The notes: generated by a model from the letters alone, not told the origin. Shown: positions 20,364-52,766, counted from the stretch's first letter. The stretch: 64,000 nt of DNA from Octopus sinensis (GCF_006345805.1 NC_042998.1:31062001-31126000); one strand, 5' to 3'. Made by a program: numbers and translations.

Positions 20364-20417
20364 GGTCACCATTTCATAGCAGCAGCTGTTGGGTGTTCAA
20401 GTGCATGTTATTGAATG
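20364..20417 (+). CDS. Putative mucin exon A: 5' UTR plus initiator ATG (20415-20417)
   Basis: Acceptor TTTTTTTTATGTCAG|, exon ends TGA ATG|GTAAAA (in-frame stop just before the ATG). Phase 0 matches the next exon. Confidence 0.45.
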
Positions 20418-20858
20418 GTAAAACAGTTAGGATGAATCACCATAAAACATTTTTGTATATAAATATATTCTTTCTTCTGTGTTCACCTTTGGTGGTGGAA
20501 GCATGTGGTATGATACAAAAACGTGTGTTTACATACCAAGTTTTGATTTTTGCTTTTGCTCTCAAAGAAGTAACATATAATATTTGTATTACGGTATGTA
20601 TGCATATGTATAATGAGAACAGACATTTTGAGAATGTGTGTATGATGAAATATTTTTCTTTACAAACCATATATCTTGTGTTGAGGTGAATAGACATGTA
20701 AATAACATATATGGGAAATTGTGTGGAGCTGAAGTGAAGACGTGTCTTTGACCAAGGCCTAGAAGCAAATGAGATCACATCGCCTGTGTAGCTCAGAACG
20801 AGGCGACTGTATCAAAGCAAGGCTACCTACATCTTCAATATATTCATCTGCTGTACAG

Positions 20859-20934
20859 GCTATTATACTATGCCTAAGTTATGTAGCTCTGCTACCAGAG
20901 TTTTATATTTGTGCCACCTTCAGCACTATTAAAG
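20859..20934 (+). CDS. Putative mucin exon B: signal-peptide exon (AIILCLSYVALLPEFYICATFSTIK)
   Basis: CTGTACAG| acceptor and AAG|GTAACA donor, 76 nt, phase 0 to 1. The N-terminus is hydrophobic and in frame with the downstream exons. Confidence 0.6.
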
Positions 20935-21868
20935 GTAACAATAGTGATATAATTCAAATGAAATCAATCCCATCTTATGCTTCTGAATTACTTATGACAC
21001 AATACAGAACTAAAATGCATATTAACAGAACTGTTCAATGCTCATACAGTCTGTAATGTATTAAGAACATTTTTCAAACTTTTCTCATGCTAAAAACATA
21101 AAATATTACATTCAAAATGCATTTTTGTATAATTGTGTCCAAGTCGAGAGGAGCTAGATGACACTGAACAAGGATATGATCTTCAGGAAAATACAATGTG
21201 CAATTTCACACTCTCATAAAAAATAATGCTACAATAGAGACAAGAGAGGTGTGAAGAAATTGTGTGAATTAAATTATCAACAGAAACACCCTTCAACTAT
21301 ATAGAATGCACAAACAAATTCATAGTCCACATGAATTTGTTCTTCAGTAACAACTTCACCTCAAAACAATGGGATAATGGACCTTTTCAATATACACAAA
21401 CCTATGTTTATTCATCGCATCCCTTGTAGAAAGTGCACACCAAGTGTGATGTAAGAACATCTGAAAACGAAACAGCTGAAATGTGTTTCTCGTTTAGCAA
21501 ATTTGATCTGAATGTTTCCACATCTCTCAAAGCTGTTGATACTGCTAACAACTCCAAGCATTTCTCCCTATTTCTCACACACTATCGTTCTTCACTCTCT
21601 CTCACTCATTCTACTTGCTTTCTCTCACACTCAACTCCTCCTCCTCCTCTCGTGCTCTCTCTATAATACATACATGTCTGCTCTCTCCAATTTTTTGCCT
21701 TATGTCCACAAACACTTAATTCAAGTCTCATTATAAATTTTCTTCAAGGTATCAAGAGAGTTAATTAAATAATTTAGAAGGTATCTTTTCAAAATTAATA
21801 ATGCATAATAGGTGCTGCAAAACCATTACTTTATAATTTTTCTTTTCTTATTTTCCTGCCATTTCTAG

Positions 21869-49300: not shown

Positions 49301-52300
49301 CAACGACATCAACCAGAGCACAAACGACATTAACCAGTGCAACAACATCCTCAACCAGTGCAACAACACCCTCATCCAGTGCACCAACGACATCAACAAG
49401 CGCAACAACACCCTCAACTAGTGTCCCAACGACATCAACCAGTGCAACAACACCCTCAACCAGTGCAACAACGACATCAACCAGTGCGACAACACCCTCA
49501 ACCAGTGCCCCAACGACATCAACCAGTGCAACAACACCCTCAACCAGTGCCCCAACGACATCAACCAGTGCAACAACACCCTCAACCAGTGCCCCAACGA
49601 CATCAACCAGTGCAACAACACCCTCAACCAGTGCCCCAACGACATCAACCAGTGCAACAACACCCTCAACCAGTGCAACAACACCCTCAACCAGTGCAAC
49701 AGAACTCTCAACCAGTGCACCAACGACATCAACCAGTGCTCCATCGACATCAACCAGTGAAGCAACATCAACCAGTGCAACAACATCCTTAACCAGTGCA
49801 ACAACACCCTCAACCAGTACTCCAACGACATCAACCAGTGCACAAACGACATTAACCAGTGCAACAACATCCTCAACCAGTGCACCAACGACATCAACAA
49901 GCGCAACAACACCCTCAACTAGTTTCCCAACCACATCAACCAGTGCAACAACACCCTCAACCAGTGCAACAACGACATCAACCAGTGCAACAACACCCTC
50001 AACCAGTGCAACAACTCCCTCAACTAGTGCAACATCACCGTCAACCATTGCACCAACATCAACTAGTGCACCAACGACATCAACCAGTGCAACAACACCC
50101 TCAACCAGTGCTCCAACGACATCAACCAGTGCACCAACAACATCAACCAGTGCAGCACCGACATCAACCAGTGCCCCAACGACATCAACCAGTGCAACAC
50201 TCTCAACCAGTGCAGCAACGACATCAACCAGTGCCCCAACGACATCAACCAGTGCCCCAACGACATCAACCAGTGCAACAGCACCAACGACATCAACCAC
50301 TGCACCAACGACATCAACCAGTGCAACAACGTCCTCAACCAGTGCAACAACACCCTCAACCAGTGCAACAACGACATCAACCAGTGCAACAACACCCTCA
50401 ACCAGTGCAACAACACCCTCAACCAGTGCAACAACACCCTCAACCAGTGCAACAGAACTCTCAACCAGTGCACCAACGACATCAACCAGTGCTCCATCGA
50501 CATCAACCAGTGAAGCAACGACATTAACCAGTGCAACAACACCCTCAACCAGCGCAACAACACCCTCAACTAGTGTCCCAACGACATCAACCAGTGCACC
50601 AACACCCTCAACCAGTGCAGCAACCACATCAACCAGTGCAACAACACCCTCAACCAGTGCAACAACGACATCAACCAGTGCAACAACACCCTCAACCAGT
50701 GCAACAACTCCCTCAACTAGTGCAACATCACCGTCAACCAGTGCACCAACATCAACCAGTGCACCAACGACATCAACCAGTGCAACAACACCCTCAACCA
50801 GTGCTCCAACGACATCAACCAGTGCACCAACAACATCAACCAGTGCAGCACCGACATCAACCAGTGCCCCAACGACATCAACCAGTGCAGCAACATCAAC
50901 CAGTGCAACACTCTCAACCAGTGCAACAACACCCTCAACCAGTGCCCCAACGACATCAACCAGTGCAACAACACCGTCAACCAGTGCAACATCACTGTCA
51001 ACCAGTGCACCAACGACATCAACCAGTGCACCAACGACATCAACCAGTGCAACAACACCCTCAACCAGTGCCCCAACGACATCAACCAGTGCAACAACAC
51101 CGTCAACCAGTGCACCAACATCGTCAACCAGTGCACCAACGACATCAACCAGTGCAACAACATCCTCAACCAGTGCACCAACGACATCAACAAGCGCAAC
51201 AACACCCTCAACCAGTGCCCCAACGACATCAACCAGTGCAACAACACCCTCAACCAATGCCCCAACGACATCAACCAGTGCAACAACACCCTCAACCAGT
51301 GCGACATCACCGTCAACCAGTGCCCCAACGACATCAACCAGTGCAACAACACCCTCAACCAGTGCAACAACACCCTCAACTAGTGCAACATCACCGTCAA
51401 CCAGTGCACCAACATCAACCAGTGCACCATCAACCAGTGCACCAACATCAACCAGTGCAACAACACCCTTAACCAGTGCAACAACACCCTCAACTAGTGC
51501 AACATCACCGTTAACCAGTGCAACAACACCCTCAACCAGTGCACCAACGACATCAACCAGTGCACCAACAACATCAACCAGTGCCCCAACGACATCAACC
51601 AGTGCAACAACACCCTCAACTAGTGCAACAATACCCTCAACCAGTGCCCCAACGACATCAACCAGTGCAACAACACCCTCAACCAGTGCAACATTACCGT
51701 CAACCAGTGCACCAACGACATCAACTAGTGCTCCAACGACATCAACCAGTGCAACAACCTCCTCAACCAGTGTAACAACACCCTCAACAAGTGCACCAAC
51801 GACATCCACCAGTGGAACAGCATCCTCAACCAGTGCAACAACGACATCAACAAGCGCAACAACACAATCAACCAGTGCACCAACATCGTCAACCAGTGCA
51901 CCGACGACGTCAACCAGTGCAACAACACCGTCAACAAGTGCACCAACAACATCAACCAGTGCAACGATACCGTCAACAAGTGCACCAACGACAGCAGTTA
52001 CCGCAACAACACCGTCCACCAGCGTACCAACAACATCAACCAGTGCAACAACCACCTCAACAAGTGCAGGAACAACAACTATGGAAAATTGGTCAACCAG
52101 TGCAACAACACCATCAACAAGTGCACCGACAACGTCAACTGGTGCCACTACAGCGACAACCACTGCACAAACTACAGCAGTTAGCGAAACAACACAGTCA
52201 ACCAGTCCAACAGCACCATCAACCAGTGCACAAACGACAACAGTTACCACAACAACAACGTCAACGATTGCACCAACAACATCAACAAGTGCACCAACGA

Positions 52301-52652
52301 CATCAACCAGTTCAACGACACCGTCAACCACTGCACAAACGACAACAGTTACCTCAACACCATCAACCAGTACAACAACACTGTTACCCAGTCCACAAAC
52401 GACAATAATTATTGAAACAACACCGTCAACGAGCTCTTTGATATCAACTAGCGTACCAGCAACAACCCTAGCACCGAAGTCCTGTATCGTTGATCCTTGT
52501 TACATTGAGAAACTTCTTGGTTATAACCCTGGAGAAATTGTTGGTGTAGTTTTCGATGAGGACAATCCTGGTTCCTCTCATGAAAATGATATTGTCTATG
52601 CTGGTGACGAAATTGAACATGGCTCTACTCTTCATATCACTTGCAATAATTG
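34325..52652 (+). CDS. Giant mucin PTS exon (~18.3 kb, ~6,100 codons of Thr/Ser/Ala/Pro repeats) ending in a Cys-containing segment
   Basis: TATGTACTTATACAG| acceptor (phase 1). The T/S/A/P frame is open for thousands of codons (e.g. 39605-46495) with a 21-bp base unit (STSATTP/STSAPTT). It is interrupted by about a dozen small indels. The candidate donor is TG|GTAATC; otherwise the frame stops at TAA 52654-52656. Confidence 0.9.
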
Positions 52653-52766
52653 GTAATCCAAATGCCTTTTACTCTTATCATATATACTTATATTAATGTA
52701 TTTTATTTAATTTTTAAATTCCTGACTTTTCGTTGTTTTTTGCTTTTTAATTTCTTTCCATTGTAG

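Follow-up and report, generated by a model that had tools for sequence, protein, structure and literature searches.

Organization of the locus

The 64,000-nucleotide (nt) stretch of the Octopus sinensis genome analysed here (GCF_006345805.1, NC_042998.1:31062001-31126000; referred to below as the window, with positions counted from its first letter) carries on its plus strand a large tandem array which reads as a protein rich in Thr, Ser, Ala and Pro (T/S/A/P), and which likely belongs to a mucin-like gene of some 6,000 residues. Tandem Repeats Finder places the array at 34416-52344, with 869.9 copies of a 21-nt unit (69% matches) whose consensus, AACCAGTGCAACAACGACATC, specifies TSATTTS. The base composition is strongly skewed (A 38%, C 36%, G 14%, T 12%). 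An earlier note on this DNA had proposed a five-exon mucin gene here, the last exon being a single open exon of 18.3 kb. That giant "exon" (34325-52656, plus strand) comprises a unique N-terminal part, the tandem array, which is rich in Pro, Thr and Ser (PTS), and a unique Cys-containing C-terminal part closed by TAA; within it, T/S/A/P coding extends from 34325 as far as about 52470.

The 18.3-kb open exon was not borne out, because no frame is open throughout it: frame 0 from 34325 meets a TAG at 34798-34800, and the sequence as given holds 11 frameshifts. A frame-tracking dynamic programme followed the T/S/A/P reading along the path 0, 1, 2, 1, 0, 2, 1, 2, 1, 2, 1, 0, with all of the 11 shifts falling within the array; the longest uninterrupted open stretch (39563-46495) comprises 2,310 codons. 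Reversing exactly these 11 indels yields, from the five-exon model, a single open reading frame (ORF) of 6,161 amino acids (aa) without internal stop. The approximately 6,000 T/S/A/P residues of the earlier note therefore hold as a frameshift-corrected conceptual translation but not as the literal coding sequence (CDS), which ends after 211 aa.

The repeat architecture is established by self-comparison. Between 34.4 and 47.9 kb there are higher-order repeats of ~429 nt and ~2 kb, evident from self-BLAST and from the 143-aa spacing of a MENW motif described below, while the part from 48.0 to 52.0 kb is made of simple 21/42-nt repeats that are ~83% alike. Young internal duplications pair 44330-46301 with 46247-48199 (97% identity) and 34507-37778 with 38610-41800 (94% identity).

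Reading-frame constraint

It is well supported that the array is protein-coding, or was very recently, on the plus strand and in the T/S/A/P frame. This frame shows no stop in 5,858-5,944 codons, while the other two plus frames have 36-41 and 76-79 and the three minus frames 764, 194 and 4 over the same region. It also remains open into the unique sequence on both sides of the array. The second codon position is C in 80% of codons. Among 770 codons of the form T_A, 754 are TCA and none is TAA or TGA; in the G_A and C_A families, by comparison, A or G occupies the middle position in 13% and 27% of codons. The spacing between AGTNC anchors ranges from 15 to 126 nt, although 629 of 640 spacings (98%) are multiples of 3, and indels between paralogous blocks measure 3, 6, 15 or 21 nt, the frameshifts excepted. 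We regard strand, frame and reading-frame constraint as settled by these observations.

The conceptual protein

The corrected 6,161-aa product consists of 41.7% T, 25.5% S, 13.7% A and 9.8% P, and its array part is 68% T+S; about 4,100 Ser and Thr residues could serve as substrate for O-glycosylation. A unique N-terminal stretch of about 30 aa (ESTTAFGTSEGTQVTTKTTSSTIPPTLTSS...) leads into ~4,500 aa in which the simple heptads TTPSTSA and TSAPTTS (~150 occurrences each) alternate with the higher-order unit of ~143 aa. After these, plain 7/14-residue repeats extend over ~1,400 aa, and the protein finishes with a further MENW unit and a unique tail of 61 aa. The motif TTTMENWSTS occurs in 22 copies in the array, often 143 aa apart, the first near 35090 and the last near 52090, and includes an N-W-S N-glycosylation sequon. 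Each site contains ACTATGGAAAATTGGTCAACCAGT, and a 24-nt core is identical in all 22. Within the repeat, Trp, Met, Glu and Asn occur in this motif alone. The repeat domain lacks Cys, and the whole corrected protein has only about 40 Lys and Arg.

Mucins have been defined operationally by a T+S content above 20%, tandem exonic repeats rich in PTS, predicted O-glycosylation sites in excess of 4% and a secretory signal (PMC9417175). Here T+S amounts to 67%, and the 869.9 copies of the 21-nt unit follow one another with no intervening non-repeat sequence; the array matches lineage-specific mucins in both composition and repeats. An intact ORF is not found in the assembled sequence, with its stop after 211 aa and its 11 shifts. 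Of the mucin interpretation first put forward, the mucin-like coding array (67% T+S, 10% P, tandem exonic repeats) is well supported, and the giant exon is not intact as assembled.

Upstream exons and candidate starts

Splice sites between 19.5 and 34.4 kb were scored with a generic metazoan weight matrix, and the ranks given below are among 894 acceptors, 785 donors and 4,290 open AG..GT candidate exons of that interval. Read directly from the DNA, the exon coordinates, AG/GT borders, phases (0,1,1,1) and peptide strings of the five-exon model are all correct.

Exon 1 (20364-20417, plus strand) contributes only the ATG at 20415-20417, which is followed at once by a donor GT, and is the weakest part of the model. 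Its donor (ATG/GTAAAA) scores 3.6 and ranks 115/785, its acceptor at 20364 ranks 28/894, and an out-of-frame ATG lies at 20405, 10 nt 5' of the coding one. Exon 2 (20859-20934, plus strand; 76 nt, phase 0 to 1) reads AIILCLSYVALLPEFYICATFSTIK plus one base. It ranks 16/4,290, with its acceptor at 17/894 and its donor at 37/785, and encodes a hydrophobic, signal-peptide-like core, IILCLSYVALL, with a maximal Kyte-Doolittle 11-residue mean of 2.78. Exon 3 (21869-21916, plus strand) is a symmetric micro-exon of 48 nt (phase 1-1) reading (E)PSNKPNTKVTVSPPT plus one base; it ranks 21/4,290, its acceptor 12/894 and its donor 57/785. The second symmetric micro-exon, exon 4 (26185-26217, plus strand; 33 nt, phase 1-1), reads (A)TASSTATTPT plus one base and has the top splice score of the interval (rank 1/4,290). 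Outside the array only four T/S/A/P-rich windows were found on the plus strand, namely exon 4 and those at 16205, 16271 and 33785. Among exons 2-4, exon 4 is the best supported. At the giant exon itself an AG precedes 34325, giving (E)STTAFGTS across the junction, and this acceptor (58/894) is the weakest splice site of exons 2-5.

We infer that 20859-20934, 21869-21916 and 26185-26217 are the 5' coding exons of the gene. Since 48 and 33 nt are both multiples of 3, the alternative skipping of exon 3 or exon 4 that the earlier note had suggested would preserve the frame. The intron after exon 3 contains a CT-rich low-complexity stretch (22000-24000; GC skew -0.26). An S/L/P/F-rich ORF of 186 aa derived from this stretch (21901-22461) begins within exon 3 and runs through its donor.

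Two other starts are available. Upstream of exon 2 and continuous with it, an in-frame ATG at 20769, with the closest stop on its 5' side at 20760, would make 20769-20934 (plus strand) an unspliced first coding exon reading MRSHRLCSSERGDCIKARLPTSSIYSSAVQ followed by AIILCL. A search further upstream for a better first coding exon gave many ATG...GT candidates, none of them compelling. The other start is associated with the giant exon, where in-frame ATGs at 34273 and 34279 open a signal-like leader (34273-34324, plus strand; ORF 34273-34800) that reads MCMKTHIILLCSICTYT and passes directly into ESTTAFG. This leader has a Lys-containing n-region and a hydrophobic core, IILLCSIC, and adjoins the proposed acceptor on its 5' side. 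Of the two candidate leaders, each with a hydrophobic core, exon 2 thus has the one with IILCLSYVALL, and the one inside the giant exon includes MCMKTHIILLCSIC.

One might suppose that translation begins within the giant exon, at ATG 34273 or 34279 and with the leader found there, the micro-exons lying outside the gene or serving only an alternative 5' isoform. Such an arrangement would need no upstream exons. In its favor are the leader directly before ESTTAFG, the modest rank of the 34325 acceptor and the weakness of exon 1. We nevertheless consider it somewhat unlikely. The bases of the 34273-34324 leader double as the pyrimidine tract of the 34325 acceptor, and such a tract translates to hydrophobic residues by composition alone. 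Moreover, a short upstream ORF (ATG 34248) lies just 5' of ATG 34273, exons 2-4 are within the top 0.5% of candidates, and exon 4 codes for T/S/A/P.

Similarity between the leaders of exon 2 and the giant exon was not significant: both the Smith-Waterman DNA and the BLOSUM scores fell inside the shuffle range, and the notion that they are paralogues was rejected as the scores were no better than those of shuffles.

Frameshifts within the array

To place the shifts, each shifted stretch was aligned with its sister copies, the indel being in every case private to one copy; the 11 positions, all given on the plus strand, are established by these alignments. The first three lie close together. At 34761 there is an extra G (ACCATTGT[G]TAC) not found in the paralogous copies at 38846 and 36816; at 34804 an A-run has an extra A which the paralogue at 38888 lacks; and at 34861-34862 an A is missing before 34862 (ATC[A]ACC), which the paralogue at 38942 retains. 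The fourth (35649-35650) is a missing A before 35650 (CACC[A]ACAAC), present in the paralogues at 39736, 37616, 39302, 35221 and 36078, and the fifth (37293-37294) a missing C before 37294 (ACA[C]CCTC), present in those at 41312, 35327 and 39408. The sixth, at 39587-39591, is a 5-nt tandem duplication (AGGAA) absent from the paralogues at 35506, 37472, 41491, 35934, 39158 and 40021.

The remaining five could be judged against the 97%-identical copy at 44330-46301. They consist of an extra A at 46476 (CACTG[A]CAC) and an extra AA in an A-run at 46498-46499, neither found in that copy; a CA missing before 46758 (46757-46758) that the copy has at 44835; an A missing from an A-run before 47854 (47853-47854) that it has at 45957; and an extra AG at 47923-47924, absent from the corresponding position 46027.

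All 11 are thus singletons of 1-5 nt without counterpart in sister copies that are 93-98% identical, and about half are changes in homopolymer length. All fall in parts of the array having paralogues of at least 90% identity, and none in the more diverged part from 48 to 52 kb. Beside them we found no nonsense substitution in about 5,900 codons. By contrast, a decaying long interspersed nuclear element (LINE) elsewhere in the window has acquired 2 frameshifts and 1 nonsense codon over some 980 codons. Taken together these features suggest that the 11 indels are probably residual long-read consensus errors, situated in repeats beyond the reach of short-read polishing, so that the real gene would be intact and encode ~6,100 aa.

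Several points weigh against such an intact gene. As assembled it is broken, with a literal CDS of only 211 aa. One 5-nt duplication and three 2-nt changes are less typical of simple homopolymer errors, and five of the frameshifts cluster in the 1.95-kb copy at 46247-48199, the twin of which has none. The argument from the lack of nonsense codons is only moderately strong, because neutral decay with 11 frameshifts would, by a rough estimate, give ~1-4 of them. Exon 1, with its single codon, is weak and has two rival starts. Finally, no homologs of the tail, of the spliced N-terminus or of the higher-order repeat unit were found in a collection of 5.8 billion proteins.

If the frameshifts are instead real, the locus would be a mucin-like gene that lost its function recently, either as a unitary pseudogene or through a null or truncated allele of ~211 aa, and its 17.8 kb downstream would have had too little time to gather stop codons. 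The indels are, after all, present in the sequence given, and the 5-nt duplication and the 2-nt changes are typical of replication slippage in repeats. The 5-nt duplication leans slightly this way, and so does the gathering of five shifts in a single member of a young duplicate pair. The databases, too, showed no matching protein or transcript-derived protein. We think inactivation unlikely. A single substitution would turn any of the 754 TCA codons into a stop, yet not one nonsense codon has arisen; each indel is confined to one copy; and downstream of shifts the frame runs on for 4.7 and 6.9 kb without a stop. The implied error density of ~6 per 10 kb would, moreover, be in line with unpolished repeats in long-read assemblies.

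Internal mini-introns restoring the frame at the shifts were considered and rejected, the repeat units being uninterrupted there and no pyrimidine tract being present. An indel error rate for the assembly was sought from a pair of 491-nt direct repeats elsewhere in the window, where a single substitution and a single indel were too few to inform.

Non-coding and minus-strand readings

It is very improbable that the array is non-coding, a 21-bp minisatellite whose open frames result from T-poor composition. The skewed composition would fit such an origin, as would several long ORFs in other frames and on the minus strand; against it, just one of the six frames is stop-free (0 stops as against 4-764), neither TAA nor TGA occurs among the 770 T_A codons, 98% of the unit spacings are multiples of 3 despite their variable length, and the frame is open through non-repeat sequence at both ends. 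Coding by the minus strand, as a Val/Ala/Asp-rich repeat of GNN codons, is scarcely credible. One minus frame does contain ORFs reaching 1,520 codons and shows just 4 stops over 5,858 codons, but it is near-open because plus-strand NCN codons read GNN in that register, and codons beginning with G or C are never stops. It does not reach into unique sequence, has 4 stops to the 0 of the T/S/A/P frame, and is opposed by the flanking splice sites and the T/S/A/P micro-exon, which are on the plus strand. The two minus-strand ORFs over the array, 47937-52499 (1,520 codons) and 39625-43728 (1,367 codons), are this GNN mirror and do not mark a second gene.

The C-terminal region

The non-repetitive C-terminal coding part (52471-52653, plus strand) reads APKSCIVDPCYIEKLLGYNPGEIVGVVFDEDNPGSSHENDIVYAGDEIEHGSTLHITCNNW and includes 3 Cys. 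The 61-aa tail revealed neither a Pfam family nor a hydrophobic segment, and its matches to PDB sequences were at chance level only (E > 0.6). An AlphaFold2 model of a 63-aa tail, made without alignment, had a pLDDT (predicted local distance difference test) of 41 and was uninformative.

The stop codon, TAA at 52654-52656, overlaps a candidate donor, TG/GTAATC (52653-52656, plus strand), with a moderate score of 2.67, which would open a phase-2 intron at 52653. The gene may stop at this TAA, an AATAAA being present at 52847, or it may continue past the 52653 donor in phase 2 to further exons. On the plus strand from 52.7 to 64 kb only translations of short interspersed nuclear elements (SINEs), LINEs and microsatellites were seen, and no candidates for Cys-rich exons.

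Relationship to known mucins

Beyond the search for homologs already mentioned, exact-product look-ups of two ORFs of the window gave no match, and the MENW motif and the unique C-terminal sequence, each used as an exact pattern, had no hits in metagenome contigs; Pfam recognized no families in two long ORFs of the array. The prediction that automated annotation would likely miss this gene fits the absence of a matching protein from the 5.8-billion-protein collection.

Vertebrate mucins usually have their PTS domain in one very large exon. Like the present locus, MUC2, MUC5AC, MUC5B, MUC4, MUC3A/B, MUC12, MUC17 and MUC16 possess a single huge exon made up nearly entirely of T/S/P tandem repeats. 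These proteins differ from the present one in carrying either VWD-C8-TIL and a cystine knot, or SEA/NIDO-AMOP and a transmembrane segment, of which none is detectable in the window, and they show no sequence homology to it. Specifically, the domains of gel-forming mucins (VWD-C8-TIL, VWC/cystine-knot) were not detected within the window, the upstream sequence consisting of LINEs and microsatellites, nor were the features of transmembrane mucins (SEA or NIDO-AMOP-VWD, a transmembrane helix C-terminal to PTS). Because these defining domains were not detected there, the predicted mucin domain is best filed with the "orphan" mucins and not with the gel-forming or transmembrane families.

Human MUC7 and rodent Muc10 are orphan mucins of a few hundred residues with ~5-10 repeats. 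The octopus locus differs from them in its size (~6,100 aa and ~870 units), in belonging to another phylum and in having an ORF that is broken as assembled, and its secretion and glycosylation are predicted. With these two and the lineage-specific mucins described by Pajic et al. 2022 (PMC9417175) it shares a putative leader and exonic tandem PTS repeats, the lack of VWD, SEA or any other mucin-family domain and of detected homology to other mucins, and a likely origin in the multiplication of a short T/S-rich unit within a single exon.

In octopus skin mucus, tryptic proteomics with annotated models as reference has identified proteins annotated as "mucin-4-like", "mucin-19-like" and "mucin-like protein" (PMC11431876). 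Belonging to the same group of animals, they are presumed to play the material role that the product of this locus would have, as glycoprotein components of cephalopod mucus. Whereas those proteins were found by tryptic digestion, this one, with ~40 Lys/Arg in 6,161 aa and no database match, would for these reasons be invisible to the method.

Genomic neighborhood

Microsatellites of the (TA)n/(TATG)n type total about 10 kb of the window, with GC falling to 8%. Blocks of (TA)n and (TATG/TATATG)n occupy 544-1949, 6409-10064, 13146-13767, 14163-15913 and 54830-57520, and are the source of many spurious ORFs rich in Y, I, C, M and V. Scans of the window for Rfam families and tRNAs found none.

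Pfam identified RVT_1 together with an endonuclease/exonuclease/phosphatase domain at 16340-19411 on the plus strand, and RVT_1 at 10899-11591 on the minus strand. The former corresponds to a nearly full-length LINE ORF2 (16466-19408, plus strand) with endonuclease, reverse transcriptase and a PHD/C1-like zinc finger, located ~1 kb 5' of exon 1. Its alignment covers aa 25-1022 of a relative 1,042 aa long, with changes of frame at ~17065 and ~17550 and an in-frame stop at 18029; those of its hits that were checked for names come from Octopus bimaculoides and Argonauta hians. A LINE reverse-transcriptase ORF of 441 aa had, among the matches checked for names, 76% identity to Octopus bimaculoides and 74% to Argonauta hians, which points to an octopod cephalopod as the likely origin of this eukaryotic sequence. 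Further reverse-transcriptase/LINE fragments, judged by eye from translations, are on the minus strand at 3348-4602 and 60563-61018.

The 491-nt direct repeats (58022-58512 and 60201-60690) are 2,179 nt apart and differ by one substitution and one 1-nt indel. Between them lie a gag-like ORF (58561-59109), an ORF with a CCHC zinc knuckle (59073-59315) and a low-complexity region rich in Lys, Glu and Arg (59374-59734); the whole is probably a young retroelement or a duplication. Inside the 8-kb intron, at 28094-28464, a G+C-rich unit of 122 nt is repeated three times (94% matches), with similar translations near 63034-63225, and is possibly a SINE family.

Discussion

On balance, we interpret the region as the central exon of an octopod gene for a mucin-like protein of the lineage-specific ("orphan") type. 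Such a gene could have arisen when a 21-nt unit coding for TSATTTS-type heptads was amplified ~870 times, in blocks with higher-order repeats, to give a Pro/Thr/Ser/Ala domain of ~6,000 residues without cysteines. This domain, punctuated by 22 TTTMENWSTS motifs with their N-W-S sequon, would end in the short Cys-containing non-repeat tail. The product is presumed to be secreted, with dense O-glycosylation over some 4,100 Ser/Thr. It would then form a hydrated, extended bottle-brush polymer, similar to those on which mucus depends for its viscosity and its function as a barrier.

The locus illustrates how genes of this type evade annotation, having no homologs, no Pfam domain, almost no tryptic sites and a frame broken by consensus errors or by real slippage. 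Giant PTS exons are in general poorly represented or mis-assembled in draft genomes (PMC9578598), and the 11 sites listed here provide a concrete checklist for polishing or validating this one.

More tentatively, the gene may be both intact and expressed, in which case it would specify an octopod-specific orphan mucin of more than 6,000 residues, grown from the runaway multiplication of a 7-residue unit and serving as a major structural polymer in the mucus of octopus skin, sucker, gut or egg coat. It would then represent an invertebrate case of de novo "mucinisation", so far unannotated and proteomically invisible. An intact gene would offer a clean example of an invertebrate mucin born of exonic repeat amplification and not by descent from VWD or SEA mucins, and would give the cephalopods, whose mucus polymers are known only by generic "mucin-like" annotations, a very large and taxonomically restricted mucin of their own.

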